Shown here: positions 5,472 through 54,219 of the stretch, piece by piece
How the letters are laid out: each line of letters opens with the position of its first letter
Numbering within the stretch: position 1 is the first letter of the stretch
DNA from: Bugula neritina
Taxonomy: Eukaryota; Animalia; Bryozoa
Assembly: GCA_964035545.1 (NCBI GenBank)
Contig: OZ037766.1
Location: 8,732,722-8,796,721 of the forward strand
Direction of reading: 5' to 3'
Length of the DNA stretch: 64,000 nucleotides
The notes under the pieces: model-generated
What the model was told of the DNA's origin: nothing
The model's input: only the letters and a program-made list of their open reading frames with translations
Database searches by the model: none
Translations under genes and position numbers: made by a program

Positions 5472-7966
5472 TCAACTTGTTACTCGGCCAATAAGAAAGC
5501 TTATTATTGCCACTCCAACTAGTAAAATGTGTGTATACGAAACTAAAGGTCTAGATTTTGTCTCAGCATTGCCATTATATAGTTGTTTCATTTGACTTAT
5601 GTCTCTCTGTAATTCTTGTATATACTGTTGATTCTGAAGAATTCTCTGCTCATTGGAAGTTGTCCGCTCCAATTGTGTTTCCATTAGATGAGAACTGTTA
5701 GCTTGCCACTCTTTACTTTGCTCCTGAAACACCAGCATGTCTAGCTATAGTTGTCTTATGATTTATTGTGCATACATGCATCTAACTCTTATTATATAGC
5801 TATACTCTCTATTTACCCAAATTAACAAAAATAAAAATAAAATTGTGATTTATTATGTATTTGCTATATGCAGATTCATATTAAATATCAATCATTCCAG
5901 CATCTGTATACATTTCCACAGTTGCAACACATGTAATGACTACTATAACCTCCCACATCCTGTCACTTGTTGAATTCTATGATCATACTGTTTATAATAT
6001 GCAGAATATTCTTTTATAAATTGAGCTGCTCGTGGCTTGTAAAATTCTATTAGGTAAAACACTACTTTGGGACAGAGAGAAATAAATAACATGCATTATA
6101 TATTATATTATTTTGTAATTATATGTCCTATGGTATATTGTCATATAATATATCTCGACTTTGTAATTTTAATGTTTTTATTGCCACTTTGAAGTTTGCA
6201 ACTTGCAGGGCTGTTTAAGTGAGGCTACATTATTTTTATACCTCTAGACATCTGGTTGATATTTGTAGAGATAGGATTTGTTGATTTAGGAGTTGCATTC
6301 CCCCTGAGTATGCTGTGGATGCAGGATAGAATGTAGCTGCTGTACCCTGTACACTATGCCTTCTATTTGGTGTGACTACTTGATACGGTAATAAGGCTAC
6401 AAACATAACACAATTATATTACTATATTTAAACAAATTAAGGTGTACAAGTACAATCTTATTAGATACAAAGGCTCATATATATTTTTTTACCTAGTTTT
6501 ACAAATAATATGACTTGTCCGTTGGTATTTTATAGCTTAGATTCATATGCTATTTACAGCTTTTTTCCACATAATAGACAGTCTCAATAATCATGCAGTG
6601 TATTGATATTTGAATTGTTTTGCTGAGAATAAGTAATCCATGAAGCATATAAGTAGTTGGAAGTATGCTCACATGCCGTACGTATGAAATCAACTTAAAA
6701 TAATATATAAATCTGTTATTACAGCCACACAACTAAAAATGTTAACTATATAATATGATTTTATTCTTTACAGTTTAAAACTTCTGGGCATTATCATGAA
6801 AAACTAGTAGTCTTCATTATTTACAATACAGCTTCCATGACTTAGGGCGCTTTCGGATTCCCTAGGCGTAGGGGTAACTGTAGGCCCTACGCGATGACCA
6901 TTCGGTAGGGAATCCGAAAGCGCCCTAATACTAATATATTCTGAAGTCATCAACATAGTATAGTAGAATATTACAACATATCATATTCACTGTACAGTAT
7001 GCAGGCTGACACAGCGAAACCAGTAGAATATTTACTTAACCTGTATTAATTTAATTGCATCATGAACAATTCTTATAATAATATTTTGTTTCAATTTGTT
7101 TGATCAATTTGCAACCTTTTTGGACTTTTTGGGAAAATAATTAATAAGGAGTACATCATACTAAACATGCAAAAGTTGAATCAATTTTGGGGTAAAATGA
7201 CATTTCATTAGTAGGCTGCTAGTTACCAATAACTCTAATGTTAATTTATAACTTAATAATTATTATTAATCAACATGGCAAAAGTCACAGTGTGCTGCGT
7301 GATCTAAGAGTAAGCTTACATGAATACGGTAGTACCCAAAAAGTATCTGTAAATAGTTATTCGTTGCATTTTATAGTCATTTACTGTATATAGTCATTCA
7401 CTGTATTTTATACTGATCTGCTGTATAATAGGGTCATATACTGTATAATATAATCATATACTGCATGATTTAATCACCTATACTTGCATAATATAATCAT
7501 CCACTGTATATAGCCATCTACTGTATAATAAAGCCATCTACTGTACACTAATCATGTACTGTATAATATAGTCATATATTGTATAATATAGTCATATACT
7601 GTATAATATAGTCATATACTGTATAATATAGTCATATACTGTATAATATAGTCATATACTGTATAATATAGTCATCTACTGTGAATAGTCATTTCATATC
7701 AGTTACAGCTGTGGTTTGTAGCAATACAAGACACAAGTTAGAATTACCACAATTACTTTGCTATTCATTTCCAACTTACAAGAGTTCCTTCTGGAATCTG
7801 AGGTGACTGTTGTGACTAAAGCACCTGTGTTTGTAGTCATAGTGAGGCTTTCATTTGAGGAAGAAGGCTGCAAAAACAAACTTCTAACTGGAGCTTCTAC
7901 TAGAAATGAGGGCACTGGTGTGTTTTCAGGTCTAGATCTCAGTGGATCATTCGTGGAAGCTGCCAT
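5472..7966 (-). CDS. Uncharacterised ~204-aa tail-anchored coiled-coil protein; exons 7966-7780, 6396-6242, 5744-5472
   Basis: Three phase-compatible exons (615 nt). Ser/Thr/Pro-rich N-terminus, Gln/Glu-rich predicted coiled coil, C-terminal hydrophobic helix ILLVGVAIISFLIG plus short tail RVTS. Probable non-coding upstream exon at 8517-8448 with strong acceptor and donor. Confidence 0.7.
6845..6925. mobile_element. 81-bp MITE with 20-bp TIR
   Basis: GGGCGCTTTCGGATTCCCTA ... TAGGGAATCCGAAAGCGCCC, flanked by TTA/TAA (TA or TWA target), with an inner hairpin GCGTAGGG/CCCTACGC. GC-rich insert in an AT-rich intron. Confidence 0.8.
7372..7692. repeat. 20-bp minisatellite (ACTGTATAATATAGTCATAT)n
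   Basis: About six near-perfect units at 7558-7683, with degenerate units upstream. Confidence 0.9.
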
Positions 7967-11769: not shown

Positions 11770-14700
11770 TCAGCTTCGCACGGGCAGGTCAGGTTGAACT
11801 AGTCTGCTCTCCCGTTCCTTATTCTGTGTATGTTCAATGAGCTTCCTCATGACTGGACCGTCAAACTGTTCTGGTGTTTCCTCAACACCTTCAACAATAA
11901 AATAATACATCACAACGTCACTACTGATCATATAAATAGCACACATATGCCATTAAGACTTGGCAAAGAAGCAATACCAAACTTCTATCATGAAGAAGAG
12001 CATAACCAGTAGCTCGACAGTTTCAATAAAAAGTTTGAAACACACTTTTATGACAAAATGATTCTGTTAAGAGTTTAAAATAAAAAAGAATAGAAATATG
12101 AAAAAAAACCACTGGATCAAGGCAACATTAGAAACCTTGAAACTGAGTGTGCAAAATCTGGTGAAATAAAAAGTTTATATGAACAGTTTGAAAACTGCAA
12201 GATGAAAAACAATCTCAAAAACTCACTACTCATCTTTAAAATATTTGGTAGTTCCATAATTTTTTCAATGGAGCTGCAAGGTAAAGCTTATAGAGAGCAA
12301 AATAGAGAGTTTCTCTTCACGTACCTGAAGCCCAATAGTATATCTCCCAGTCATTGCTCGGCAAGTTTATTATTTTATCGTATTCCATCAACTCAACTTC
12401 TGACATCGAGTCCAAATACTTGTGAGCAAAGGTGCTGTTGTAAAAGTAGAGAAGCCAGGTGAGATATTGCAAAATAAATCCATCAAACGCAACAATTAGA
12501 TCTGCACAAATGCATACATAAATTCTCAAAACAATAAAGGAAATTGAATGAAGGGCAGTTGTTGTGATAATTTTATATTTTAGAAATAAAATCACCATTT
12601 AGTTTTTTCTGAATTTAATTTAAATAACCATGTTTTGTTACTGTTATAAATGATAACTTTACAACACTGCAATAGGCAGGTGTTTGGCAATCTGCAGTGT
12701 CATATTGTATGTTACATAACAGTTCAGTTACTTTATTCTACACCCATTTTATAGCTACTGCTCATATTTATACTAAATATGTAGTTAATTATTTGAGTAA
12801 TAACAAACGATGACTGCACTCCACTTAGAGCTGCTATTTCTCAGTTAGATGATTTAAAACTGCCTGGTTTTCTTGAAAGTCACAATACTGTGCCAACTGA
12901 CTGCTATAAAACCTCAGACTGTCAGAGTGTCACTCACAGTTTTGCAATTATAGGTATATGGCAAACAGCAATTTAAAAGTATAGACTGGATAGTGGAATT
13001 TGATAGATGTATGCAAACCTTAGTTAACAGAATACACGCAAATAGCAATCTCTGCCACAGGCTATGTGTACTTTACCTAAGAACTAAATCTGTTTCTTTT
13101 ATGCCACGTTTTCGAGACTGGTATAGAAGCCTGGCTCTCTTTTGTTGAACAGATTCCTCTGGCTTTGCTGAATATACTGGAATTTCCACATAAGTGGTGT
13201 CTCCACAAATGCTATTAGTCACTGAGAGGTTTCTTCTACATAGTTTAGCAACACTTGACTGCCAGCAAAACACAAGTATTTAAGTAAATAGATTATGACT
13301 ATGATCCATAACTAAATACTTAGCAATAAAAAAACTCTATAAGTTTGTAGTTACTATCCCTGTGAGAATCTCTGATGAAAAGGGTTTTTATAAAGTGGAC
13401 TTTTTCTGAAGTGACACAAGAACAATTATAAATAACTGGATGCTCGTCTTAACATCAACGCAGATGTTTGGACTTAACCATTGACTCTGTGTTTACTAGA
13501 CCATGCCTAACCACTGCACCACTACTGCTCTCTAAGATAGTGAGCAATAAAATTGAAGCAATATTAACATGCTTCTTTTTTACCAAGACTGATGAGGCTA
13601 CTATTAGCCAGCGCCTGTAGTGATCACAAAAGACATATTTGAAGTTTATTAGCAAATTACAAATAGTTCTACAGTTGTTAAGTTTCAGTTTTAGTAGAAA
13701 CTCAGTTACTGAGACACGTATGTTACTATTATATTTATTATGGATTTATTAAAAGTAGTTGTGCCAGCCTTTGATAATGATGGCTCATTGATTGAACAGA
13801 AAGCTTTGGAAAACTGCTTACAAACATGTTTTTTTAGCTCAAGCGTAAACTTATCATTGAAGGAGCAATTTTAACTAAACTTGAAACAGAGCATTGCAAC
13901 AATAAAACAACATGCAGTTATCAAACAGCCATCTGCTCAAAATCAAATTTTCAAGCTTTTCAAGGCCAGAAGATTGCAACCTTTTATAAGCATGTGTAAT
14001 GGTTAATAAATTCAGCCAAACCAGATTATCTAGCAAAAATAGAAGACAGGTGACTCTAAAAAGATACTTTTCCAACCTTCATGCTGAACACATATGTTTT
14101 TAAACAGCTCTACACTTGACAGTAAGTATGAGGTTGAACCATTCTGATTGGGAAATATCAAATTCAGTGATTCTCTTCATGATCATTTCATTAATGACGA
14201 ATGATTTATAAAAACTTGAATTATAATACTAAAACTAAAAGTGGAAGTAAATCTTAATTCTTATAGTTATAGTAATAGCTAAATTTCAACTTGGAAGAAA
14301 ATGCAGAGCTTTTAGACTTAGTTTTACTACTAGTACTAGTACTACTGCTGCTAGTACTAGTAGTGGTACCTGTACTACTACTACTACTCCTAGTACTACT
14401 CAACTTTCATCTGCTTATGATGAACTATTAAATTCAAATCGGTCAATAAACACTCGATCTGCTAAGAGAGGAAAACCAACATCAATTTTTGCATCCTCAC
14501 AGACCTTTCACAACAGTTTTCTCCCTCGAAGCATCAGAGATTTGAGGATACCACCTCATAACACAAACTCAGCTTAGCTATGTGCTAAAACCCCTTTACA
14601 TTACAATTAAATATGCAAACTTAGCTAAATGCTAGAATAGATACATTTCAACACATGGTAAACCCAAACAAAAACAACATAAGAGGCACTCATAATTTCG

Positions 14701-15310
14701 CGCCTGTAGGTGTTAGCAGAGTGTTCTAATTCTTACGAAGTGAGTTACGAGGTGAGTTACTACTACTACTAGTAGTAGTAGTACTAGTGGTACTAATAGT
14801 ACTAGGTTTAGTAACTTAAACTAGTACCCATGTGGCATGGCCATACTTATACTGATACTCATACTCAGTCAAAGTCATACTGATAGTTAATCACTGAAAG
14901 TGAATGTGATACTCATAGTCATAGTCATACTGATCCAGATCTGACAGTGACTACGTCTACTGAGTAGGGACGTGCCTACAGAGTCTTATACTTATAGTTT
15001 ATTCATCTTACTTGAATTGTTAGTCGCGTATTTTGATGTCTGAAAAATCTCACAGCAAATACAAGATTGTTTACTGAAGTAACAGACATAACCAAAGGCA
15101 AATTCGATGTTAATAATCTGGATTTTAGAAATATTACTACGAAATTAGCCCGCTACGTTATGTTACTAGTATAGTTTGTAACCAGTGTACCAACCAAGAT
15201 ATCGGGGCTATGCATAAGCAGCACGTCTAAGTTAATTCTTATTTGAAATAAAAAGGCTATTGAAATTTTGTGAAGTTACATAATTTTTAAAGGAGTTACC
15301 TCCTCAACAT
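11770..15310 (-). CDS. SDHAF2: Succinate dehydrogenase assembly factor 2 (SDH5); exons 15310-15300, 13614-13584, 13258-13077, 12434-12325, 11888-11770
   Basis: [25 protein letters not shown] and [10 protein letters not shown] motifs, an Arg-rich mitochondrial-type N-terminus, and all phases fit. Confidence 0.93.
14320..14965. repeat. Promoter-proximal 3/6-periodic tract in SDHAF2 intron 1, split by a LINE fragment
   Basis: ACT/AGT runs at 14324-14400 and 14758-14805, then CAT-ACT-GAT-ACT-type hexamers at 14842-14934. Confidence 0.8.
14401..14760 (+). mobile_element. 5'-truncated non-LTR retrotransposon (CR1/L2/Crack-like): ORF2 C-terminus, 3'UTR and GTGAGTTACGA-type tail
   Basis: Frame 14401-14577 reads ...[33 protein letters not shown]..., resembling the conserved FxNSFFPRTIR end of these ORF2s. 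A second copy lies at 37999-38193. Both flanks are TACTACT. Confidence 0.8.
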
Positions 15311-16024
15311 AGCGAGAAACCAGAAGTTTTCAACTCCTAAAATGGCAACTTGGGACTGTCGAACGCAAAATGTATCTTTTCCAGTTCAATGGTCGAGCGT
15401 ATCGATTGCAACTTGCACGCAGTAGCCAGAGTGATTATATATATATTATATGCAAAAACTGTTCAACCCTATGTAGCAGCCACCACACCATTTTTAGACA
15501 TTAAAATGCAGCCGGTCCAAAAATCAATGAGGAGTTACCACAGCCAGAAAACAAATCTGCTGCAAGCCACTTACAGGCTGAAGCAAAACTTCAGGGAACA
15601 AGTAGATTTTTCAACATGCCATGTTGAAAGGACGCCTGCCAGCCAACCATGCACCCTCACTCCACTCAAACAGGAACAAGCAAATTTAGTACTCATGTAT
15701 CTTATTTTTAATCTAGAATGTTTATGTTGTTAGAACAAAATTAATTATTTGTGTTACCAGGCACAATCAACATTGATTTCATCTTTAATGGCAAAGCAAT
15801 TCATCTAAGCCACACAATAATATTATAGCTTATGGTCACCAGTTCAGAATTGAGCCTGTTCATGCATTTTATGGATGCAATTGGCACTTGGCAGAATAAA
15901 ATAACCAAACAAATGGTGGTAGTGTGTACATGATATATTTCTGTAGAATATACACATTGTTGTAATCGATCCATAAATTGTTGACATTATTGAATAGCAG
16001 TTTGGTACTCCAACAATGTAAACT

Positions 16025-18053
16025 CTATTTCTTGGTGGCCTCTTCTTCCTTAGCATATGTTTGAAGAAGCTCAGCCTTCTTTTGGTTGAGTCTCTCCTCA
16101 CGACGTCTGCGAGCTTCACGGACCTTGTGTCGTCTGGCATCAGCTTGGTCACTGTAACACAGAATAATCTCTTGTAGTTACAACTAAATGGACAACAAAA
16201 TTATCATATTTTGGTCTCTGACCTTCTCCATCTGAAACTGACTTTTTGGGGCACGCTTACCTGAGCTGTTTAGATCTAGCTTGGTCAGCCTTCTTTTTGT
16301 GAATGTGTTCCATGAGTGTTCGCTTGTTCTTGAACACATTACCCTTACATTTGAGGTAAAGAGAATGATACCTAGAAAAAGAGACCATTTGCTTTAACAA
16401 TATAAATATTGTATACAATATGAACAGTATGTTTCAACTATATAAATATTGTATGCAATATGAACAGTCAACATAGCATCAACTATGCCAACCTGAAAAG
16501 ATTACCAATTAATCTTGCATTGAGCTTCTACAGCATCTAGCTTTTACATAGAGCTGGGCATTGCCATGCTGAACTTGCAAACTTTAAGACGCAAACAGTA
16601 TTAAGGTTATTTGTCTAAGGGAAATACGGTTCCTGATGAACTTACAGATGCTTATCAATCTTCTTGGATTCCCTGTACTTTTTAAGCAAACGCCTCAATA
16701 CTCTTTGTCTTCTCATCCACAACACCTGAATTTTTTAGAGAAGCAAATTTCAATAGTTATTCACTCTGGCAAGCTCTTAATAACCTTTTATGAATGATAT
16801 ACTAGTGTTATAATTTTGCAACAACGGCCATATGAAGGTATAAATTGATGAAAGTACAATAGTGTTGTTAATTCTCACCAATATACGATTACAAACTCAA
16901 AGCACAATCAATTTATACTATGTAAATATTAAAAAATGCACATAATGCAATACAAGCAATGCTGATCATTAAACGGCCTATTACCTTGGTTGGCATACGG
17001 GCATTTGCAGTACCCTTTCGTTTTCCAGGACCTGTGTGCCTGCCTTTTCTTCGGGCTATGGCATTACGTCTGACTCTCCAACGAGAATGAATCACTACGG
17101 GTTTTCTAATGATGAGACCATCCTTTATCAACTTTCTAATGTTCTGTCCTAAATCACATAAGATATTGCAATGAATAAAATTAATGCTGTCAAAATTATC
17201 AATAATTGCTGTGAAAGATAAACCAATGCACAGGTTGACCGTTATCATACTCACTTGATCATAATTTAGATGACCAAGTATGAAAATAAGACTCAAAATG
17301 AGAATGAGGATCTGGGTTAGGGTATTACTTACTAGAGTTAGCATTGTTGATTTCATTAGTTTCATTGGGATCAAGCCAAACCTTGTTTTTCCCACATTTC
17401 ATCACAGCGGACGCAAGCCGCTTCTGTAGTCGCAGCGTACTATATAAGAGAAGAAAACCGAGGAAAGTTAAAAATAAAAAATTAGTTGTTAGCATTGTAC
17501 CACTTTGTTTCATCTTTGAATTGACATGTTGATGCTGTGATCATATGCATATCTTCAGTTGCATCGATTAAATATTAACATATTATACTATAAAACTAAA
17601 TGTAATTTAGTAACTAACCGTCATTTAGCTTATCACTTATTTATATTATCAATCAGTTTCACATTTACTTGCAACATCTACACGATTATCATAATGATAA
17701 TGTTTGTTCAAGTCTAACTGAAACTCGTGAATATAATGAGTTTCACTGCGAAATTTGAGTCTTAATTACAATTAGATAACCGTTATAGCAAATTTATTAC
17801 ACAATAATTCTTAAACACCCAAAGTGAACTCTAAAACAGTAACCCGAAGTTTAACATGCAGCGTTGTCATTCGTCATTGAAAGTTACTCAATACTCATAC
17901 TGAATTAAACCAAATTTAGCTTTGCTTTCCGTTATAATTGCACAATAATAAAAACTTTAAAGTTTAAATATTGTAAAAAAATGTGTTTTGAAGATGAAAA
18001 ATACTGTAAAGAGCGTATAACTATGAAATTAAAAGAAAATAGTCTTACCTCAT
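16025..18053 (-). CDS. RPL19: 60S ribosomal protein L19 (eL19), 197 aa; exons 18053-18049, 17439-17333, 17148-16985, 16725-16646, 16371-16261, 16151-16025
   Basis: [28 protein letters not shown]...[21 protein letters not shown]; exons total 594 nt. Confidence 0.98.
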
Positions 18054-18400
18054 GGCTGCCACTTCAATATGGAGGTTGAAAAAGAACCTTTCACGTCGGA
18101 TAACCGGAAGATACCACACGAACATGTAGGTAAATTCGAGGCTGTTGCATTTTTTATTATAGTTTTTAGTTTATAATTCATTATGTCAATAATTTTGTTT
18201 ATTTTTTATTATTTTATTAATGAATTGATAAAATCAACAATATTGTGTGAATATTTACCAACGTTCGCATTTACATTATTATTGTGTAAAAGCAGTGTAA
18301 TAATATAATTGCAAGTGCAGCTTAGTCCAATTAGAAGGCGATGGCAATAAACGCAGTACTTAGCACGTGGTAGCCGGACTACAATCAAGTGCGTTTGGTT
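18054..18400. promoter_or_regulatory. Bidirectional RPL19/POLG2 promoter with TOP/TCT-like start
   Basis: Minus-strand pyrimidine tract TTCTTTTTC at about 18078-18086, just upstream of the RPL19 ATG. Also ETS-like CCGGAAG near 18104, CACGTG near 18364, locally raised CpG, and a candidate plus-strand donor GTGCGT near 18389. Confidence 0.65.
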
Positions 18401-18459
18401 TCGCTTTTACTTTTAGCAATGCAAATTTCAATTTGTAATATAAATAATTATTGCGTTTA

Positions 18460-19170
18460 CTAATAGTAATACCCACAGTACTACCATTAGTAATAATTAT
18501 TTAATACTTTAAAACATTTACATAAGCCAGGGTGTTGATACTAGTAAAAGTTTCAAGGATAACTGTAAAATTGATTATTTTATTTGATATTTTTCAGTTT
18601 GTTTCAAATTCATCTACTTCTACTTCTAGTGATCTACTACTACTAGTACTGGTACTACTAGTACTGCTACTATTACACTTACAAGTACTTGTATTTTTAA
18701 CTTACTGTTAGTGGTAATGTTACACCTACACTTGCAGGTACTGTTACTGTTATATAATAATATTTAGATAGACTTACAGTTATTGTTGCACTTGCACTCT
18801 TACAGTTACTGTTAGTCACTTAGTGTTACTTTAACTTAGTCTTAGTCACTCTTACCGTTGCTCGTAGTATCAGTATAACTATAAGTATAAGTAACTAATA
18901 CTATAAATAAGTCTAAACTCTAAGAGTAAGAGTAAGTCATAGTGATACTCATACTGATACTCATACTGATAGTCATACTGATACCGAATTGGTGAGTCTC
19001 AGTCTCATACTCACTTCCATACCTTGAAGCAATAGTTATATTTATACTTATACTTGTAGCCACTAGACCTGGTGAGTAAATTAGCTTTACTTTTACGGTT
19101 AGTGATAACAAGAATAAAAGGCAATATTCACATTGGGTGGCTTAAGGTTACTTGTACTTCTACTACTTGT
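18460..19170. repeat. Promoter-proximal 3/6-periodic tract in presumed POLG2 intron 1
   Basis: 18935-18982 reads AGT CAT AGT GAT ACT CAT ACT GAT ACT CAT ACT GAT AGT CAT ACT GAT (every third base T). ACT/AGT runs at 18635-18675. Confidence 0.85.
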
Positions 19171-20327
19171 AGTTATAATTTTTCTCTTCGTATTTATATT
19201 TATTTATGCCAACATCTTTTTCATCTGTAACAACAATAATAATAATTAATCTGTAATCTAAATAGAAAATTTCCCTATCTCAATATGATACTAGTAAATT
19301 TTAACTAACCTTATGCTTATGGCAGCCCTTTATTAAGGACAATTGGATACTTCAGGCCCTCTGATTTCATTTGATCTACATCTTTCTGGGGTGAGGTCTT
19401 ACGCCTAGTTTTTGCATGAAATTTAACTTTAAGTTTTAGTTTATGACTGACTTCAAATTAAATCAATGATTATGATAGCATTTTTTGTATCATTGGCCAG
19501 TTTTAGACTTACTGATTGTAGTCAATATATTTTCACATGGCAATGTAGAAACAAATAATACAGAAAAGAAGTATTCCCTATTATCCAGTAATAATTTACA
19601 ATAAGTAAGCTCCAAGCTCCTTATCGTTAAATCAAAGCTGGCTGTGTAATTATTAATTAATGCTGTTAGATAGTTAAATCTAGCCCTGGCACATATTATG
19701 CAAAGTGAGTAAGGTAAATGTTAACCTTTTTAATGGTATAAAAAGTACCAGGTGGTGAAAGACCTTTAAACTCGTCATTGTACTTAGTAAGTCTAATTTC
19801 TTGGAAATCGAAATGCTCACCATCATTTTTTTAATATCATGATTGTAGATTGAGCTTGTCAATGTGAAAAAAAACAACAAAAAACCTGTTCATACAAACC
19901 CTTATAATTGCTGATTTTATATTATATGTGCACCGACAAGCTTTTTTCTTAACCTTTAGCTTGTTTATATACCTCGCAGTTCAAACTATAGTAATAATAA
20001 TATCTGTAAATAAACTGTAAATGACTTTCTGCCAATGCCTTATGGTTTGTTTATGTTAGTTACATGTTTATTAATAGCAGCTCACATAAGTATCATTATG
20101 TTGTTGCATAGGTTGAACAATAATATAGGTTACAACCATAACTACCTGATGCCACTTCTAATTTTTAATTTTTTTTTAATATACTTCAAACACTGTTGAA
20201 ATAGAATAATTTGCAGTATCATAGATAGCAAAGCAAATGTTTGAAAAATATAAGCTTATTATATATAATATATACATGTCAAAACTGAATATTGTAGAAT
20301 GCAAAAATTTAAAGCACTATTAATGTA

Positions 20328-24603: not shown

Positions 24604-27530
24604 TTAAGCAGGGAGCTGCAGTTTTTTACCTTGAAGCACTACAAGATATTGACAACGGTAACTTTCGTGATGTGGCACATGTGTCATTAATTATGCACAA
24701 CAAAGAAATGTAATCTAATTAGGTAAAACTAATAACTTCCTATGACAGTTTTGGTGATGGTTTAATACAAAGTTCAAAAATTGAATGCGATAAAATATGG
24801 TGAAAAATTTTATGCAAAAAGTATATTTTGCAATAATTTATTTATAACTGTTATCTGAAACCAAAACAAAACCAAGTTTCAAAAGTTAATTTTTCTCACC
24901 TTTAGTGATGTAGAGATAGAAGAAATCACAGTACAGCACAGTTTGTACTATGCCAGCCACAACTGCTATCACGTCAAAGTTATTCTCATAGTAATATCTA
25001 TAAAGCCAATTCATAATGTATAGGCCACGGTAAGAACCAAGAGCAAACAGGTAATGGCTTGTAATAGTTTCAGCTTCTCCAGTTTTACTAATCATGAACA
25101 GTTGAGGAAGAATGGCTACAGCTTCTAGATAAATGGAAAATGTCCACAGGATCTACAAAAATAGTTACATTTTGTGAACTCGGTTTAGTTGGTTTAGAGC
25201 CAGGGAAAATATTGAATGCCAAACTTTCAGTTGGTAGTGAGCAATACAATATATGAAATAACTTGAGTTAATTTTCTTACCTCCATGGGTGAAAACTCAT
25301 GGTTAACAACAATTGCTAAGAGTGCACAAGGAATAAGTAGGAACTCCATTCTGAAGGTATCATGATTGCCATCATAAGTAGCCTTGAACTTCGTATAAAT
25401 AAGATACACAGTGGCAATCGAAGAGCTCAGAAAGAAGACCTTCATTATAGTGTTATAAGGCGACACAAAATTGGTTACCAAATCCAAATATCTCGTAACA
25501 AACACCAATCCAAAGAGGATCTGACTCTTTCCTGATAAGCCTGTAAAAACCAAACACATTGACATTATTTGTTATAAACCACAAGTAAATGAAGTCAATA
25601 TATGAAGCATCATCTTAAAATTTTCTACTCCTTTTGTAACATTTATTGTATTATTACAGAAATTAAAATTGCTTGATTCTAGGTGGCATGGTAGGTGCAC
25701 TGTGAAAATTATATTTTTATATAGCCAACAAATCTCAAAATATTCAATATTGCACAATACATTTACTCTTCTATACCACAGAATTAATTTTAATTCATTT
25801 TCTAACACAAAATTATATTCTATTTTCGTTCGATTTAGTGAACTGTAAGCTTGCAATGACATAAAAAGTGATACATGATGGATAATTTCCATATAATATG
25901 CCGAAACTTGAGGCTAAAATAGATGTTTGTAACTAGAATATCTAGAATATCGAAGAAATGAAAAATAAAGCCATATTGGCATCACAGTGATTTGAAAGAT
26001 TCAAGGTACAAATAGCCTATCCTGTTTCATCTATGCTCATTCATATATTGCTCTAAAGTAGAATGTAAAAATTATTTTCAACAACTGTATCATGCAGATT
26101 CAACTGAAGATGCACTTTATAAGACAGTTACAGTGAAAAACCAAGCTGCAGAGTGAAAATATTTATGTTTAAGCAAATTTAAATAATTTCTTAGTTGAAC
26201 AGTTTCCACAATTTGGTATAGAAGTTACATGGATGTTAATTTTAATGAGCTATGCATAAAATGTTAGAGTAGGTCAACTTCTCTTGCAGATCGCAGGGTA
26301 ACTGAGCAGCCAGAATGTGGATATTACTGTACTAGTTTAAACAAGTGATGTTATACTCATACATTAATATTTGCATAGGTATGATAACTTCATTCGTATA
26401 TCCAAAAACTTTTTTGAACAGTCTTTATAAATTGCTAACTACATTCCTTATCTTAGTAGACAACAAACTTTAACACAGTTTATTGTTTTCCAAAGCTAAG
26501 ATGTTATTTAACTTAATTTCTCTAAGATTGAATCCCATATATTTTTACATATTAGATATATAAGACTTTTAATATCAAACAACTTTTAGAGGGGCCAAAG
26601 AACTGTAAGAGTAAGTGTTAAAGGTTAATAATTACGAACACTTAGTGGTAGATTTAAAAGTAAATCACCAAATTATCAAATGTATAATCAAATGCTAAGA
26701 AAAATCTAGAGAATTTGATTTTAATTCCAAATTATATTATAAACTAGTCTAAGCAAGTCTTTTCACTTTTCAAATGATAAGTCAGGTCAATTAATTATTA
26801 GAGTTATGACAACTGCTTGTAACTGTAATACTAATTGTAAAATAGTTGTCCTTGTAGACAGTCAATCACATTATCATATATGATTCTCACAGCATAATAC
26901 TAATAGTAATAGTAATATTAATTTCCTGCAAATTATCAATAAATTACTATTACTCAACTATTAGCCATATTAGGACATGAGTGACATTATGATTATGACT
27001 ATTCAGATTCTTATTCTATACTGCTACTTTTGACTTTAGTAATAAAACTGTAGAAATGATATTTTACCTTTAGTTTCATGCCAATGCGGATGCCACTAAA
27101 GCCATTTAAGCATTTGAAACAAAAACTCAAATAATAAACCTAAAGATCGTAAGATAAAGAACTAAGAAGTAAGTTTACTGTTTAGGTTTCACTTCAACTT
27201 CAAGTTTAACTTTAACAATATTACTATATTTATCTCTAAGATTTAATACTTATGATTACCATCACCTTATCATTACGAACACGTGATACAGAATATTATT
27301 ATTATGAGTGAGATATCAGATATGTAATTGTATTAGTATATTTTTATTTTGAACTAATTTAGTATTTGCTCATTGTTTAGTATTTCAATTTGCTCATTAT
27401 TTCGTATTTACTTTTAGTATTTTATTTTTTAAAACTTACCAGCTACAGATCGACTTTTCCATATTTTTAAAAGCAATAAGACAATGGCTGCAAGATGACA
27501 CAAATCACCAACCAGCCTAAAGGCGTTCAT
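24604..27530 (-). CDS. KDELR: ER lumen protein-retaining (KDEL) receptor, 212 aa; exons 27530-27440, 25540-25281, 25152-24900, 24638-24604
   Basis: [13 protein letters not shown]...[10 protein letters not shown]...[18 protein letters not shown]...[23 protein letters not shown]; 639 nt. Confidence 0.98.
26174..26302 (+). repeat. Dispersed ~129-bp repeat, copy 1 (KDELR intron 1)
   Basis: Near-identical to 28893-29021; both end in CTTCTCTTGCAGATCGCAGGGTAAC. Confidence 0.85.
26890..27320. repeat. Promoter-proximal 3/6-periodic tract in KDELR intron 1
   Basis: AAT ACT AAT AGT AAT AGT AAT ATT; ATT ATG ATT ATG ACT ATT; TTC ACT TCA ACT TCA AGT TTA ACT. Confidence 0.6.
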
Positions 27531-27594
27531 TCTTCCAATAGGACGAACTTACGGCATCAACTGATTAAGAAAAAAATGTTTGAAACTGAACGCG

Positions 27595-27625
27595 ACTCAA
27601 TGAAGACGTGGCTTCCCGTGAATTG
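27595..27625. promoter_or_regulatory. KDELR promoter: XBP1/UPRE-like GACGTGGC
   Basis: GACGTGGC at 27605-27612, about 75 bp upstream of the ATG in a CpG-enriched patch. ACGT-core UPR elements are expected in secretory-pathway genes. Confidence 0.4.
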
Positions 27626-28352
27626 TGGGAAGTTCATGTGCCACTGCAGTACCGTTTGTATAAGAAATCGTATCACAGTTCAAGGACATGTAGAAAATCG
27701 GAGATGAACTCAATGGCGACGAATATGATGTTATTTACTATGATTGCGTGACGAGAACGATAAGGGAGGGTAACTCTTTGAAGCAACTTATTTAGAAATA
27801 ACCTCCGATTCTGTCATACATAATACAGCTTCCAGTTGGGTGTCAAATTATGTAAACAACTGTAACACAACAAAACTGAAGTATGCACACCCAAAGTTAC
27901 AACAGTTAATACCACACACACATACACACACGAAAGAAAAAAATCACAACTTGAAAGAAAAAATCCAAAGACTACCAACATAAACTCATGCATCACATCA
28001 TGTTCAAGCTGTCACACAACTTTCTTCTTACAACGACAAAGAACTAGACTGTGTTATGTATTTATTGGAATATTTTGCTCATTTACTTTTTGTTCTTAGC
28101 ATCCTTTTATCTATGTGCTTATTCTTTTTGGTGTACTCTCTTGTGTATACTTTCTTTACTATATTTTCAGTTATGTAGTTTTGTTTTACAGCCTTTATTT
28201 AAATATGTATCTCCTAAAAATACATTTTCGTGACTTTAGACTTTGTGCATATATAAACAAATTTTATGTAGCTGTTCTTGCAGGCTAATACTAGAGAGGT
28301 TTCAACAAATAATTTCTTAATAATGATATGCCAAGAAAAGTAGTTGCAATAA

Positions 28353-28691
28353 TCAATTAAAGCCAGCCCAATCACTTTGCTCTGAGTCTTCATCTGCATC
28401 TATCCCAACACATTTGATTCCGTTTCTAATCATTGGAGTGCCTTTATTTTTACCTGCATAAAGCATAACTTTAATTAATAATCAATTACTCAAATGGTGA
28501 AGGCCAGGCTTGTGTAATGAATGCCATCTTCATTCCGGTGCCGGTATAAAGGTTGAGTTTGCACTTTATAAGCCTGTCAAAAGCTCAACCAGCCAGGTGC
28601 CTGGATTACTCATTACGCATGCCAGGATAAATTACAATTAAATACTACTATAGTTCGACTTTTTTTAGAAATACTAAAACAAATATATACG

Positions 28692-28723
<32 letters not shown>

Positions 28724-29994
28724 TAAAAATAATAACAGTAAATAAAAGTCAAAGTAGTTACCTAATACTCTTGCCAATAGTTTGAGAGTGAGTGACTTGG
28801 AGTTATCTACACTCGTCAACACCAAAGACTCATTGACTAGTTTGTCTTTATATGCATGGAATTCTACATTAATTGTATGACCTTCACCTAAACAAATTTA
28901 AATAATTTCTTAGTAGAACAGTTTCCACAATTTGGTGTAGAAGTTACAAGAATGTTAATGTTAATGAGCTATGCATAAAATGTTAGACTAGGTCAACTTC
29001 TCTTGCAGATCGCAGGGTAACAGATCTCTTCTTCCACTAATACCAATTTACTTTGCTACTCAAACGAAAATGCAATTGAAGTCATTTTAGGTGTTATAGG
29101 AAATCAAAGAAAGTAAACCTAACTGTATATAATGAATAAAGAGATATTAAACTCTTTTAAATGATTATTCCGTTATTAAATATTTAAAAACTTTAAGGTC
29201 TCCTTTTCAACTTCTGCTTTTGCCAATAGACTATTTTAACCTTTTATGCTTTAGAGTCTCAAATGTAAGCTTTCACTTTATCCATTAAAAAGAATCCGAT
29301 ACAATTTCTGCATGCTTTGTGCTTTGATTAGGATTCTAAGTAGTAAATATTGCTAAGATTGTATGTACTGCTTAATTTTACAGATGAGCAACATAAGCAA
29401 CATACAAATAAATTACCATCATCTGTAGGCACACATGATGTTACACGGCAGTGAAGATTTTGCAGTGGATCAGCTGAGATATCCTCTCCAAGATCATCTG
29501 TTACACTAAACTGTATTACATAATGATGGTTCAACTTGAGAAAACCTACAAGAAAACCTGCATGAAGGCATATTTTTTTGGACAAAATTTTGGCATTTTA
29601 GGTTAGGTAGTTTTGTCTAGGGGTTTCAACCCTACAAACATGAAAGATCTACATAACTAAGAATGACAATTTCCCATGGCCTTTCCCCATTTTCACAATC
29701 CAAATTTCATTACATCAAATGACAGAACAAAGTGAAAATTTACATACGAAGATCCACAACATATTATTTTTTGAAATGACAAGAAAATTTACCCAAGTGA
29801 ACTTCTTGAACAGAGTCACTCTTTTTTTCAATTATTATGGCAAGTTCATGACTTCCCTCTGAATCACTTTGCTTGAAATGAACATGAGATTCTTCAGCAT
29901 TATTTTTTCTAGCATCAGCCACTGCAATGTTCAAGTCTTCATCATTAGGTCTATAAGCCAAGCATGATATACTAGTATATGAAACTAATCTACA
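28353..29994 (-). CDS. ADISSP: UPF0687 / C20orf27 (ADISSP) orthologue; exons ~29994-29793, 29545-29417, 28887-28762, 28453-28353; start-codon exon unresolved (first exon about 31560-31457)
   Basis: SHVHF, VHLGFLKLNHHYVIQF, VEFHAYKDKL and ARVLGKNKGTPMIRNGIKCVG...DSEQSDWAGFN* parallel the human C20orf27 motifs. Phases fit. Confidence 0.88.
28507..28623. mobile_element. Degenerate foldback/MITE in the last ADISSP intron
   Basis: GGCTTGTGTAATGA pairs imperfectly with TCATTACGCATGCC; inner pair GGTTGAGTTT/AAGCTCAACC. Confidence 0.5.
28893..29021 (+). repeat. Dispersed ~129-bp repeat, copy 2 (ADISSP intron, abutting the acceptor)
   Basis: Near-identical to 26174-26302. Confidence 0.85.
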
Positions 29995-30479
29995 CTATGG
30001 ACACTTAATATACATTAAATACTAAAAACAACTAGCCCCTGTTTCCATATGCAGATTATATCAACCATTAAGTGTAACTGCCTGTACTTGTGTTAAAATG
30101 AATATTCTGTTACTGATTATTAAAACTTATAATGAGTTATAAATGATAGCCATCTTTATGCTGCCATTTATTAGCAAATGGGAGTCGTACTTTTATTCAT
30201 ATATCAATCTGTTGAATATTTTACTTTATTTTACAGCATCTTTATGTAATAGTAGAACTAACAAAGTTATAGCATTATTTATTTTTAATTTTATGGTTTT
30301 CACAAATTAAGATTAAATTCAAACAGTACCTATCACATAGTCTTGTGCAAATCAAACCATCACCACTTATAATTTATTGCACCATCAACATTGCCATTAG
30401 CTATATATTAATATAAGTAATCTGTAATACTGTAACAGTTATAGTAAATCACAAACTTGTATACATAAAATTGAATGTA

Positions 30480-31110
30480 ATACTAACAGTAACACCGAAT
30501 ATGTAATAAATATAATAATATCTATGTTGATAGTTCTACTTATAGTTATAGACAACAGTGCTAATTAAGAAATTATTATTGTAAATTCATTAAACTTAAT
30601 AATACTAATACTAATAGTGTTAATATTTTTAAAATTTATATAGTAATAATAATATTACTAATAGTAATACTAATAACCTTATAATATAGCAAAATTACAT
30701 AAAATAATACTAATACTAATAGTAATAGTACTAGCAGTCATTTTGGTTTACTCTTATTACTTTTAGTCTTACACTTACAGCTACTGTTAGTGTTACTCCT
30801 AAACTTAGAGTAAATATAAAATTGCAAACAATTAAACATACTTGTGAACTTCAACTGGAGTCCTAGACGTACCAATAGTACCAGTAATTGTAAACGTCTT
30901 CTTTTCCTACTAATACTAATAGTGGTGAGTACTACTAGTCTACGAACTAGTACTACTGTACTAGACCTACGGACAAGCCGCTGGGAGTAGGCGTCTAAGA
31001 GTTAGTCTAACTCAAAGTCTTATAGTTACTAGAAGTAGATAGTTAGTCTTACTACTACTACTACCAGTACTACTACTAGTACTATTATAACTTTATTGCC
31101 TATGGCTGTT
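30480..31110. repeat. Promoter-proximal 3/6-periodic tract in ADISSP intron 1
   Basis: AAT ACT AAT ACT AAT AGT AAT AGT ACT AGC AGT (30705-30738) and ACT ACT ACT ACT ACC AGT ACT ACT ACT AGT ACT ATT (31051-31086). Confidence 0.85.
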
Positions 31111-31294
31111 ATAATAATTTTATACGATTGATTCAAATTTAATCTCGCCAAAGCGAAATGACACAAAGGCACAGCTTATAAGGCTAAGTAGGCAACAAGA
31201 ATGTTTCATCCTAGTAACTGCTGGTGGATAGTGAATACACTCAAATACTAATAGTAGTAGTTTCACTTTGCTGTTACACTATAACGGTTGAATG

Positions 31295-31417
31295 GTTCTA
31301 TAAGCAGCTCTAAGTTGGGGGTGACTGAGTGCAGTAGTTCTATACACTTCAACTTTGAACCCGAAAACCTCAAATTACTGCACTTAATCACTCTGAACTC
31401 AGAGCTGCTTATAGAAC
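31295..31417. mobile_element. 123-bp MITE with ~41-bp imperfect TIR
   Basis: GTTCTATAAGCAGCTCT...GTGCAGTA mirrored by TACTGCAC...AGAGCTGCTTATAGAAC; a similar end sequence occurs near 55613. Confidence 0.75.
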
Positions 31418-32396
31418 ACCTTAGGATCCTTAGCCTTAGAGTTTACAGAACTTACGTAATTTAGTAATGGGAAACGCCAGTGATCGCCACACTCACTGTG
31501 TAGAAATGTCGAGAAGCATCATCTGATCTTGGCAACCCTCTGATTGCTGGTATTACAACCGATAAAACATTGAAATGGAGATAAATCATTTCAATGCAAT
31601 AAAATATTATATGTTATAACTCATCAGGAGTTACAACATCATGTACTGTTTCCCTCCCCCCACTTATTATTTTCTAGTTTGAAACTTTCTTGAATAAACA
31701 AATAAGATTCTCATACTCCACAGCAGTAGTGTGTAATATATTATTATAATTATATAGGAGATCCCTAAGCTATAGAATCTGAATGATAGCACAATTAATG
31801 TTTAAATTATACCCAGCTCACATTATTTGATTGATTCAATGTATAAAATTATGATGATTCATTAGTTTACATAATAATTTAGAACAGTGCAACGCACCCA
31901 GGTCAAAGCTAGGAGTTTGAAGTATTCCACTATTTTTATTGAGTCCACTAAAACCAACAGTGCCCCTACCTATTGAAATGAAAAATTTCATTCCATCTCA
32001 ATACATTCCTGTAATTTTATTTTGTAAATATATAATTGATCAACATCTTAATTTTTATTATTCATTTTTAGTTATATAGTATACATAGTATGCAAAATGG
32101 TACAAGTAATAATATAGGCTAATTGCTTTCATTAAAAATATTATAATCTAGACAAGCATATTGATAGCAGTTAATACAATAGTCATTTTATAACATAGTT
32201 TGGCACAATAAAAAGCACACGTTTAGAGCAGAAAAACATGGATTTAGAGTGAATCAACTTGAAAATGTGTATCTGTAGATGACAGTGAAGAAACTCATAT
32301 GCAAATTATACAATCATAATAAAAAATTGATAGAATATAAATAGAGTTGATAAAGATGCTAATGAGTATATCAGTAGATAAATTATACAGGCTCAA

Positions 32397-37543
<5,147 letters not shown>

Positions 37544-37899
37544 TCTCAAAGTCTACAAACTCTAAAGAAAATAAATACATTCAATTTTAATTTATGAAAC
37601 TTTTCAACATCAATAAAAACCTAAATCATCATGCTCAAAATATAAACAACATACATTAACACATTTTTACTTAATAGATGTGGGGTGACATGTCCAAAAT
37701 CCAAAGAGCACCAATACTATAAATTTATGAAAACCACAACAGTTCAAGGCAAAACTACTTAGGTGAGCTAGTGAGGTTTTTTAGTGACTCAAACTCAAAC
37801 TGATGACATTCATGAAACACCAACACTAACAGAATAAGGATTATTACATAACCTCAGGGCACAGTCTCAATGCCCATTAGCCAATTGTTTTGCTGCTAT

Positions 37900-38640
37900 T
37901 GAATTACTACAAGTGAGTACAACTACAAGTACAATGCAATGTCAATGTGAATGCACAATTTATGGTATAACTGTAACACCAACTATAAGGATAAGAGTAC
38001 ACAAACTCAGCTTAGCTAGCTATGTGCTAAAACCCTTTACATTACAATTAAAATATCCAAACTTAGCCACATGCTAGAATAGATGCATTTCAACATATGA
38101 TAAACTCAAACCAAAACAACATAAGAGGCACTCATAATTTTGCGCCTGTAGGTGTTAAAAGAGTCTTCTAATTTTTACGAGGTGAGGTGAGTTTATGATA
38201 ATCACAATGACGATAACAAACTAAAACTAACCTTATGGTTTATGCTTATTATTAGTATTACCAATTATGTTATTGTTAACCACTGCTTTCAAAATAATTA
38301 TAAATTTAAAGTATTTATGATTATTATTATCATTATGACTATGATTAACATTAAGCTCAAGTTAAACACCACAAGTTGAAGTACTACGACTACGTCCAAT
38401 AGAATAACTATAACTACTGGCACTGCTACTAGTTGAAATACAAGTATTGAGTATAACTATAATTATAACTAAAACTATAAGTATAAGCATAATCACGTTA
38501 ATCTGAATTATAATCATAATGATAATGATTGTCATAATTCATTAATTGTGATGAACTCACTCACTCACTGATGCGATTACAATGATTAATGAATGAATGA
38601 TATTTTATTATTTATAATTATTATTATATCATAAACAATG
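37900..38640. repeat. Promoter-proximal 3/6-periodic tract in the SLC25A46 5'UTR intron
   Basis: AGT ATA ACT ATA ATT ATA ACT AAA ACT ATA AGT ATA AGC (38451-38489); ATT ATA ATC ATA ATG ATA ATG ATT. Confidence 0.75.
37999..38193 (+). mobile_element. Second, shorter copy of the LINE 3' end seen at 14401-14760
   Basis: Aligns by eye with 14561-14757 (ACACAAACTCAGCTTAGCTA...CATAAGAGGCACTCATAATTT.GCGCCTGTAGGTGTTA...GAGGTGAGT). Confidence 0.85.
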
Positions 38641-38953: not shown

Positions 38954-40787
38954 GTAGAATCTATATGGAACTTATGATTTTTCGATGCAATTAAACAAAG
39001 TGAAAGCTAAATAAATGCATTATACAACCCGTATATACTATATTGGTCAGCTCAAACACTACTGCTATATGCAATTATTTTGCATATTAGTGTTACATTG
39101 TAGATATCAGCTAAATATAATATTACTGTAAAATGCAATTTCGTACATAATTTGTAAAATGCAGAGCATTTTTTTTAATTTTTTCATAAATTATGTTCAT
39201 GTTTTTTTGCAGCCGTTGTGATTTTAGTAAGCATGCACTTATTAAATTGTATGCTTGATATTCAAGATGCCACTAATAAAAGTGACTTTACTATGTCTTG
39301 ATAACAATCCCAGTGTTTTCACTGGCAGCCATGAGAAAACTTTACCATGCCATCAATGCTGTTATATACTGAATGTTTTAAAATTATATTACAACAGGAT
39401 TTAAATTAGCAATATGTTATAATTAACATATAATGTAGATAAAATTTTATTTCAATAAAGTAACTTTTGCTATACATGCAGTGCAATATTATAAAAAATA
39501 AATGTGGCTCCGTGCAAAAGATAAGGCTGGCTTTGGATATACATACATATTTATGCTACTACTAGCTATAGTTCTTAATTCAGTGACACATACATATTAT
39601 GGGGTAATAAAAAATATATACATGTATGCATATGTGTAATTACAGTACTAAATGGATAGGCTATACTACAGATTCAAATGAACATAAGTTAATATAGCTG
39701 ATGTCTTTATATAGAGAACACTTACCACTTTTTACTGTAAAACAAGATTTAACAGCCTTAATTAGCCATCTTTTATTTAATTTAACATTAGATCAATAGA
39801 TTTTGTTTAATGTCTATACTCTATAAGATATAGCTTTAGCGTCACTGTCACTACTACTCCTAATTTTCTTTCTAATGCTCTGAAGTAAATTGTAGAATGT
39901 AGATTTAAAAGTAGTATTTTGTTACTAATTGCAGAGACAACTTCATCATCTTCCTGTTCAATATCTTCCAATGTTATCCTATGCATGGTCTATCACTTTT
40001 TCCAACACACATACTCCATCATCTAATTCATCTCTGCCAATAGCACTCTTTGCTTTTTAGCGAATACTTTCATTTCTATAACTTCATTTGGATTTCTAAA
40101 ATATGTTTTATAGATTGTCACATTGACTTGCAGACACATGATAAAATATATTTTGGCAACACATTTGTATAATTCACCGTTATAAACTGCATCACAAAGA
40201 TTTGCTATAATTACCGATAGAGGTAAAACAATTCAACAAGTATATTTTGGAATTGTATTCCCTGTTACATTTTTTCTACAGTGCTGTGCAACGCATTGCG
40301 CCATCCATTATGGAGAGCATTATGTACCAACTAGTAACTTTCAAAATATATATTTTGAACAAATTAATTTGTAATAGAGTAAAGAGTTACAATCTTAGAT
40401 GGGTTTCGACGTACTTAAGGTTATATACTAGGGAATACTATAGGGATGTAAATTTAGTAACTGCATATTGATAGAAGGCAACATGTTGTAAAGCTATAAA
40501 CTTTCTTTGTTCAAGTCATAAAAGAAATTATAAATAAACTTACTAAGTAGGAGTGTTGGTTGGAGAGACAATCTCATCCACACTAGTAGTCAGAGAAGCG
40601 TTATCAGAAAGTGAATGTTTGCTAGAGTACAATGTATGAATAAACAGCCAAGGATATATGATCTGAGAACAGAGGAGAATAATCAGCTTGCTTCACCAAG
40701 AGACAGATACAGAGTGAACTTTCGATTGTTGAACTAGTCGCAAGACACAACGCATAATGCAACTTGTGCCATTGTTAACATCATGCT

Positions 40788-41088
<301 letters not shown>

Positions 41089-42643
41089 TAAACATAAAAT
41101 GAAGCATGGCTGAACTTATATATATTAATAATTTAATGCAATAATTACACAACCTATAATTATTGTATTTTATAACTTTGTTAGAGCTTTAGGTGCAACA
41201 ATTAGGCAGAAAACTTTCTACTTTACTAATAATTTCATATAATATTCACAAGCCGTAACCTAGCAACCACTAGCCCCACACAGTGCAGATTGTAGGCCAC
41301 AAAGACATTACTTAAAAGTTAGAACTACGTTGCAGCTTATGTATTGTAAGTTATTGGTAAGTTATTTATGTTTTAAAACTAATTTGTGTAATTATAGTTT
41401 CAGCTAAAACTCGCAGTTATACATTGCTTATGGTTAGCAGTCAACATGCATTATAATACTACATTCATAACTTATATTCACTCATGCATATTGCAGAAAC
41501 ATTACATACTTGCTCATAAAAATAAAATGTGTAAATATAATATTAATTGTGTGCTTGGGTGTAATTGTTTTTAATTGAGTAGCAAAACTAATTTTGGCCA
41601 TTGCAAATTTGTATTGTTACAGTGATCACTCACTCACCTCATAATATTCATATGTATCAGCTTTTCCTTATTAAACCTCAACTGAGTTTAATTTAGTTGT
41701 AGTTTATTCCAACTTTTTCGGCACTACTTGGAATACTCTACTAGAATAAGTAAAATTCAGCCAATCAGAGAAATGGACTAATTCTAGTGTTTCACCATTA
41801 CTTGACAGCTCAATTAACACTAACTCATTAGCAATAAACAAAATTCACAAGATACATGCTATGTGTTGTGGTAAAAATAATCTAGGCCCTAGGTCATATT
41901 TTCAGACCTATTATAGCTTATTTGCACTTTTCAAACATGTTTTAGTGAAGAAATTTGAAAAAAATTAACTCAAAACCTAAATTTAGAATATAAAAAAAAT
42001 AATTCACATAACCAAAATTGCACCACTACCTTTTCACTTGGAGGTAATAAAGGCACTGGGCACACACCTTTCGTTGGCTGAATTTTGCAATGTCAATTAA
42101 TGCTAACACGTAATTATCACAATATTTAATTAGAAACTACAAATTAACTTTTTCTCCGAGTATATTAATTACATTTTATAAAAAGAATATGAATATCAAC
42201 AAATGAAAATACCAAATATTACCTAAATTTTATATAACTATTTCAGTTGTATAAAAAAGTCAACCATAAAAGTATGAGCATATTTTGAAATGAAGGCATA
42301 CAAAAAATAACATAGAACTGAGTGTTTCAACACAACATACAATAGAGCAGTAAGGGGCAACTTCCATTAACTCTTAATTATAAAAATCTGAACGAACATT
42401 AATGAAGCTGCAAACCTCTTCAATACTAAAATAAAAAGAATTATGAGCTTGCAATTACCAAAAAAACTCTCTGAATTATCTGAGCAAAGAAATGATAAAC
42501 AAAAATAGAATGCTATCACACTATATTAGAATGAACATGTGCATTACAATATTACATCAAGTGTGTTGTAAATAATAATGAAAAAGTGAATGGTTTGCAA
42601 ATACCAATAAATTTTTGAGTAATTGGGAAAACAATTTTATGTT

Positions 42644-54195: not shown

Positions 54196-54219
54196 GCCAA
54201 TACTAATAGTAGGTAGGGA

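Follow-up and report, generated by a model that had tools for sequence, protein, structure and literature searches.

Behind many gene starts in the genome of the bryozoan Bugula neritina lie tracts of non-coding DNA, 0.3–1 kb long, that are patchworks of six-base units. The evidence supports a genome-wide, promoter-proximal sequence class that is neither a transposon family nor a plain microsatellite, and no description of such tracts was found in the literature, including the bryozoan genome papers that were searched by term. We tentatively favour a reading in which the tracts are stacked 6-bp duplications with complement flips, left as the DNA was broken with a stagger and rejoined time after time; for the cutting, insertion and excision of a hAT-like element is the strongest candidate. 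The window is the whole stretch of DNA analysed, 64,000 nucleotides (64 kb; A+T 68%) of contig OZ037766.1, and coordinates below refer to it unless they carry a genome prefix; the genome searched comprises 216 Mb.

The tracts were located by a period-3 Fourier scan over the 64-kb window and by a lag-6 autocorrelation scan with its cut-off at the 99.99th percentile of block shuffles. A sequence-only reading of the window had named six tracts, at SDHAF2, POLG2, KDELR, ADISSP, SLC25A46 and RASSF, and a weak one at RPL19, and both of these objective scans recovered every one of them. Apart from tracts, the lag-6 signals in the window were three dinucleotide repeats only (28622-28806, 34836-35072 and 40743-41137). 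The limits first given for two of the tracts needed revision, as those of SDHAF2 and SLC25A46 are each split by a 5'-truncated retroposon copy, and the sequence that follows the RASSF tract on its right belongs to a 2.7-kb mobile element, which has a tract of its own. The features are as follows, no strand being assigned to the tracts themselves.

14196-14403, no strand: left half of the SDHAF2 tract, upstream of the minus-strand Sdh5 exons 13273-13076 and 12598-12320
14404-14757, plus strand: retroposon copy in the SDHAF2 tract, non-LTR, 5'-truncated, with a (TACGAGGTGAGT)n tail
14758-15026, no strand: right half of the SDHAF2 tract, abutting the CpG peak 14857-15659
17647-17773, no strand: weak RPL19 tract inside intron 1, lag-6 score 0.21
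18526-19275, no strand: POLG2 tract, the focal tract, lag-6 score 0.47 against a shuffle maximum of 0.22
26794-27320, no strand: moderate KDELR tract in intron 1, beginning about 120 bp past the exon-1 donor
30429-31174, no strand: ADISSP tract, between the CpG peak 30847-31194 and the DUF4517 exon 29961-29767 (minus strand)
37884-38588, no strand: SLC25A46-side tract, split at 37999-38186 by a retroposon copy
37999-38186: second copy of the (TACGAGGTGAGT)n-tailed retroposon, 5'-truncated, in the SLC25A46-side tract
53542-54129, no strand: RASSF-side tract, beginning about 25 bp past a candidate minus-strand donor
54210-56907, plus strand: 2.7-kb non-autonomous cut-and-paste-type element with ends TAGGTAGGG...CCGTACTA
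54785-55182, no strand: tract inside the 2.7-kb mobile element, from the comparison of its three copies
56920-57160, no strand: tract right of the insertion site of the 2.7-kb element, from the lag-6 scan

The focal tract lies between the divergent CpG-rich region of RPL19 and POLG2 and the first recognisable POLG2 coding exon (ATG at 20328). Its stretch 18460-19170 is a chain of hexamers in which the phase is held as the letters change (e.g. TACTAG TACTGC TACTAT TACACT; CATACT GATACT CATACT GATAGT). Near it, a candidate non-coding exon at 19336-19400, with AG/GT borders, adjoins a bin of faint RNA-contig depth.

Together with four 50-kb blocks on other chromosomes, 264 kb of DNA were scanned, in which 22 tracts make up 10.2 kb (3.9%); within the window alone their share is 7%. 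Three of the four extra blocks contain tracts, while the fourth (block C1b) is satellite-like and free of them. One tract 20-mer occurs 765 times in the genome at no more than one mismatch, on both strands equally. None of the tracts holds a long ORF, by which a coding origin is ruled out. The best matches between tracts are 83-92% identical over 53-90 bp, and those of greatest length (up to 211 bp) reach only about 75%; they occur in both orientations and in several registers, and no two tracts align end to end. Since these matches are so brief and so mixed, the tracts do not form a single dispersed repeat or transposon family, as had already been claimed from the sequence. An inverted-repeat scan for MITEs inside four tracts gave strand-switched sub-arrays only.

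The proposal that the class is promoter-proximal was supported, with 18 of the 22 tracts in the 264 kb lying within 300 bp of a CpG peak against 6.2 ± 2.1 expected; in 2000 trials of random placement the maximum was 14. Its refinement, that the tracts occupy first introns, is shown directly in two genes and is putative in five. In KDELR, exon 1 is read at 27530-27440 on the minus strand with a GTAAGT donor at 27439 (the exon 2 ORF, 25565-25230, matches PF00810 proteins), and in RPL19, also on the minus strand, intron 1 is set at 17440-18048 by an RNA-contig joint (17439/18049). For POLG2, SDHAF2, ADISSP, SLC25A46 and RASSF the tract is found in every case between the CpG peak and the earliest coding exon that can be recognised, and gene order would place it in intron 1; gene models were searched exon by exon, not as joined models. 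In RASSF a candidate donor (GTAAGT, 54155-54150, minus strand) follows a candidate ATG at 54195, giving a putative exon 1 from sequence alone. The four cases that appear to be one-directional (SDHAF2, KDELR, ADISSP, SLC25A46) have their tract on the gene side of the CpG peak only. Tracts start 25-330 bp behind exon 1 and span up to 1 kb, and within the window none lies away from a 5' CpG peak, which agrees with the earlier remark that internal introns have nothing comparable. Their base composition is strand-symmetric relative to the promoter side, and a bias towards the transcription strand is not present.

Inside the tracts the dominant period is 6. The earlier description, a period of 3/6 nucleotides built from triplets, needs correction in that 3 is not the main period: the match is 0.475 at lag 6 and 0.40 at lag 12, against 0.357 at lag 3 and an expected 0.295. 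Other lags give a match of about 0.25, and duplications at lags 7 and 8 are hardly enriched. TA dinucleotides recur every 3 or 6 bases, with TA-TA spacings of 1 and 4 bases at 30% and 21% in tracts versus 9% and 6% in the background. Positions occupied by C or G (S) recur at lags 6, 12, 18 and 24 without lag 3; the probability of S given S is 0.53 at lag 6 (baseline 0.28) and falls under the baseline, to 0.20, at lag 1, so that S positions are isolated. The context of a lattice S is A.T or T.A in 86-89% of cases. Unit types vary both between and within tracts (TAATAS, ATASTS, TACTAS, ACTGTT and others), higher-order repeats of 12, 15 and 18 bp are present, and no consensus common to the tracts was found.

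Whether an S position holds C or G is nearly random from one unit to its neighbour (identity 0.555, where random is 0.50), and A-versus-T identity between neighbours is kept (0.70). Among the cases with identity at all five following positions, 106 have S flipped and 78 have it unchanged. Among 125 isolated lag-6 differences, 60 are C<->G (48%), 24 are A<->T (19%) and 23 are transitions (18%), so that complement-type changes amount to 84 (67%), compared with 2 of 27 in diverged retroposon copies. These copies, 12 from the same genome with 27 events, served as the neutral-spectrum control and gave 67% transitions, 7% C<->G and no A<->T; in the non-tract part of the 2.7-kb element, three of six differences are transitions and none is C<->G. 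As the tract spectrum is unlike both the retroposon and the element controls, the unit differences do not stem from ordinary point mutation. Runs of lag-6 match pile up at lengths 4, 5 and 11, bounded by complement-type mismatches, of which 43% are C<->G at run length 5 and 78% at length 11. S flips in both T.S.A and A.S.T contexts, and does so independently of flips at the neighbouring central W (A or T) and of the second S in the same hexamer; both S are flipped in 14 of 56 pairs of two-S hexamers. The palindrome content of the tracts equals that of controls in which C and G were permuted at the S positions.

In their head-to-tail short units, unit-length indels and higher-order repeats the tracts resemble microsatellites and the cryptic simplicity produced by slippage. 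They depart from these in the spectrum of unit differences (48% C<->G versus 7% in the genome spectrum, 18% transitions versus 67%), in a C/G identity that is nearly uncorrelated between neighbouring units, and in a position tied to promoters. The statement that the tracts are not simple microsatellites is therefore upheld, as the unit differences lie off the genome's point-mutation spectrum and C and G are nearly random between neighbours.

Mobile elements land in the lattice, and in register with it. Repeats were recognised by a 22-mer index of the DNA read, and all three of the multi-copy element insertions detectable in the window are in or beside tracts, which cover 7% of it. Two of them are copies of the (TACGAGGTGAGT)n-tailed retroposon, of which the genome holds at least 41 copies at 83-97% identity, other copies reaching further 5'. 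This family is young and inserts preferentially in or next to hexamer tracts, with a tract within 1.5 kb of nine of the 11 other copies sampled (loci L002-L012). The third insertion, the 2.7-kb element, has three copies in the genome that are at least 99.2% identical, with sharp ends (TAG...CTA) and different flanks. The two copies outside the window, each with clear tracts on both sides, are as follows.

G000:C2:4168798-4171505: copy of the 2.7-kb element
G000:C6:7726385-7729081: copy of the 2.7-kb element

The window copy sits between two tracts and is bordered by a 7-bp target duplication, CTAATAG, at 54203-54209 and 56908-56914. Across the three copies the duplications read C-TAATA-G, G-TAATA-G and C-TGTTA-G, and their length is 7 bp (8 bp fits two of the three). 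Being of the form S-N5-S, each of them spans, on the 7-bp reading, one lattice S to the next, and the motif STAWTAS is 18-fold enriched in tracts. Between the copies, the element-borne tract shows three substitutions, none of which is C<->G in this small sample, together with a 3-bp indel and the clean gain or loss of a single 6-bp unit (TAATAC, 54898-54903); the rest of the element (2.3 kb) differs by six substitutions and one indel. A clean 6-bp indel between tract copies that are 99% identical, although a single event, shows that growth in 6-bp steps is still going on.

Besides its internal tract, the element has a CpG-rich stretch resembling a promoter, with an exon-like GTAAGT donor (54453), and has the look of a gene 5' region that was captured. 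Its source may be a diverged sequence at G000:C2:14440108-14440334, which matches it in part (79-82% identity). On the minus strand of the window, a candidate RASSF start codon is followed, within 54195-54150, by GTAAGT, and because the element is inserted at the CTAATAG site 8 bp upstream of it, the promoter of the RASSF-side gene may have been displaced. The hAT dimerisation domain has 14 matches in the genome, three of them of equal score and in stop-free open frames of 563 aa, which may belong to an active family.

G000:C1:30462367: hAT domain match in a 563-aa frame
G000:C3:28905230: hAT domain match in a 563-aa frame
G000:C5:1593917: hAT domain match in a 563-aa frame

On the reading that we tentatively favour, the initial few hundred transcribed bases downstream of active, CpG-rich promoters would, in the germline, be cut with a stagger and rejoined many times. 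Every such event would add 6 bp copied from the adjacent unit and leave the base pair at the joint in either orientation, and as such events accumulate, the lattice would result, in which TA returns at steps of 3 or 6 bp and every 6 bp hold one or two C:G pairs of random orientation. A hairpin-forming (hAT-like) cut-and-paste transposase is the foremost candidate enzyme; its element would insert at S-T-N-W-T-A-S sites and then excise; since each round of insertion and excision makes a further target site, a tract would feed its own growth. Local stretches of a single unit type call for duplication in 6-bp steps, and the known process by which short tandem duplications arise with complement changes at the joint is the excision of a hairpin-forming transposon. 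It is for this property, and for the presence of an element in register with the lattice, that stacked scars are ranked first; that excision footprints built the tracts, by such an enzyme and in the germline, is what we infer. Among the three options that the sequence-only reading had left (a protein-binding array or other code, a chromatin or methylation boundary, the footprint of a local mutational process), the mutational footprint fits best. The protein-binding or code option gained no positive support, given the absence of a consensus and of a promoter strand bias and the nearly random orientation of C/G.

The comparison with known footprints of hairpin transposons (the hAT elements Ac/Ds, hobo, Hermes and TcBuster, and Muta1) is mixed. 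These retain a duplication with a complement base at the junction, and hairpin-forming cut-and-paste elements prefer gene 5' regions; on our side, 67% of the unit differences are of complement type and an element with a 7-bp S-N5-S duplication lies in the lattice. Known footprints, however, are single, heterogeneous and derived from an 8-bp duplication, whereas here hundreds would stand in phase, each with a net gain of 6 bp. From the 8-bp duplication of hAT elements or the 7 bp of the resident one, one or two bases would have to be lost per event to give 6, and that the 7-bp duplication must net 6, by one base lost or overlapped at each rejoining, is a misfit of the scar model. In a classic hairpin scar two adjacent junction bases are flipped and short palindromes are left, but here the flipped S are isolated rather than in adjacent pairs, palindromic additions are absent and palindromes stay at the level of the S-permuted controls. 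A hairpin, fold-back or inverted-copy origin was rejected, as palindromes are not enriched and S flips are not joined to flips of the central W.

Further points strain the scar model. With one junction per event, double flips should make up at most about 12.5% on a rough estimate, and the 14 of 56 seen are about twice that, which calls either for repeated hits at a site or for flipping by a distinct process. Flips are seen in both T.S.A and A.S.T contexts, more than one nT...An target rule would cover. Scars of NHEJ tend to be heterogeneous, yet the tracts hold their phase over 100-200 bp. The only recent 6-bp indel is an unflipped copy, which counts against the model, and the presence of tracts on the transcribed side only (four inferred cases) is not predicted by a preference for open chromatin alone. 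Excision alleles were not seen. Footprints of Tc1/mariner type (TA plus terminal bases) were considered and discarded, the 4-nt TA spacers being too diverse for one element end. A broader formulation, which we regard as possible and a step less probable than the scar model itself, is that a transcription-start-linked germline process, be it a transposase or an undescribed cut-and-flip repair, writes the lattice continuously over ~4% of the genome and that the lattice is the preferred landing pad of unrelated mobile elements. If true, first introns would be self-renewing sinks that keep insertions out of exons.

An unlikely alternative divides the signature between two processes, slippage or unequal exchange expanding the hexamers and a separate, transcription-start-linked process flipping C:G to G:C. 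For the flipping, the candidates are loss of cytosine with REV1-type placement of a C across from the abasic site, as in hypermutation that depends on UNG/REV1, and oxidative G-to-C damage. Such a division would account for the independent flipping of every S, even of two in one hexamer, for the saturation of S flipping with W positions intact, for the higher-order repeats of 12, 15 and 18 bp, and for the only recent event being an unflipped 6-bp unit indel. The location of the tracts, which begin 25-330 bp past exon 1, reach 1 kb at most and lie on the transcribed side only (in the four apparently one-directional cases), also speaks for it, this zone resembling that of transcription-linked hypermutation. 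Zones of AID/UNG/REV1 activity start about 0.1 kb past the promoter and show C:G-to-G:C changes on both strands in repetitive intronic DNA, and in them and in switch regions the DNA is rich in palindromic hotspot motifs. The tracts share with them the promoter-downstream zone, the involvement of both strands, the C:G-to-G:C changes and the repetitive intronic DNA, and TACT/AGTA is a context of the WRCY/RGYW type, which counts in favour of two processes. They differ in that a deaminase gene was not found, transitions are few, many ordinary genes are affected and the feature would be a germline one. The genome gave no match to APOBEC_N or Inv-AAD deaminases, which is weak evidence because the search went exon by exon. 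Deaminase pathways would moreover yield many C-to-T changes, yet transitions are at 18%; A<->T flips are enriched too (19% versus 0-3%) and would be left unexplained by a C-specific process; half of the flips fall outside any single deaminase preference; and C<->G makes up none of the three recent substitutions in the element-borne tract, again a small sample.

Rather improbable, in our judgement, is a lattice maintained by selection, in which TA steps every 3 bp and a strong pair every 6 bp would be read without regard to whether that pair is C:G or G:C. An orientation-blind lattice would fit a minor-groove reader; the selected property could equally be mechanical (easy unwinding, nucleosome exclusion), and its role a promoter-proximal one in chromatin or that of a harmless landing pad for mobile elements. 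The W/S pattern is kept while the orientation of S is scrambled, as such a reader would allow, and the consistent promoter-adjacent position, the strand symmetry and the three window insertions, all in or beside 7% of the sequence, are in keeping with it. Against this, unit types differ between and within tracts, so that a common recognition sequence is absent, and a local stretch built from one unit type requires duplication in any case. A minor-groove reader should be indifferent to A versus T, whose identity is nevertheless kept (0.70); RPL19, a strongly expressed gene, shows only a weak tract; and to hold some 4% of the genome under constraint base by base would come at a high cost. Intron 1 of KDELR orthologues in two other species (contigs L045-L049, 39-41% GC, 74% nucleotide identity to the window exon) has no tract, an observation that weighs little. 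A known parallel, the PATCs of C. elegans, was proposed in the sequence-only reading. PATCs are likewise non-coding, intronic, periodic and consensus-free, and the tracts too may go with a gene class, but here the period is 6 and not about 10, the lattice is one of TA and S and not of A/T runs, and the tracts occur only within a few hundred bases downstream of the promoter. The analogy breaks down on the period, the match at lag 10 being 0.275 against 0.295 expected. Were the lattice under selection after all, it would be a new kind of promoter-proximal DNA signal, blind to base-pair orientation.

Promoter-linked staggered breaks made without a transposon, by topoisomerase II, meiotic Spo11 or polymerase-theta templated inserts, are very improbable: the promoter-proximal position suits them and short tandem duplications are known products of filled-in staggered breaks, but topoisomerase II gives duplications of 2-4 bp and Spo11 a 2-nt stagger, neither of them 6, and inverted inserts of the templated kind should turn W over along with S and enrich palindromes, neither of which is seen.

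For transposons that target microsatellites, the microsatellite is, in the cases known, an ordinary, pre-existing target. The insertions described here, by a cut-and-paste element and a retroposon, resemble theirs in entering simple-sequence DNA; the target class, in contrast, is unusual, promoter-linked and possibly produced by the insertions. Examples of such targeting are MuTAnT in Medicago (PMC4486113) and microsatellite-targeting arrays in guayule and rice (PMC5907723).

If the tracts are scars, as we tentatively hold, they would constitute a kilobase-long natural record of the sites at which the germline genome is cut, and would show a mobile element making target sites for itself over a few per cent of a genome. 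For work on bryozoans, they mark gene 5' ends without RNA data, draw in mobile elements, and will mislead repeat masking and short-read assembly. RNA-library contigs for window positions 14000-19999 join the 14.9-kb and 18.9-kb tracts by 'joints' that skip about 4 kb; as these tracts share words, the joints are assembly artefacts and not splicing.

Some minor observations were made along the way. The tract-free block C1b (G000:C1:15000001-15050000; L018-L022) consists almost wholly of repeated 22-mers, with up to 135 occurrences, contains a 5-kb CpG-rich island at 27411-32426 of the block, and looks satellite- or heterochromatin-like. Block C1a (L013-L017) has two identical 212-bp direct repeats, 4 kb apart (37884-38095 and 41962-42173 of that block), each followed by a tract within about 100 bp, which may be the LTRs of a young element. 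Lastly, a 20-bp tandem repeat at 7372-7682 of the window (TATAGTCATATACTGTATAA, 15.8 copies) contains tract-like words at a period of 20, away from the detected tracts.
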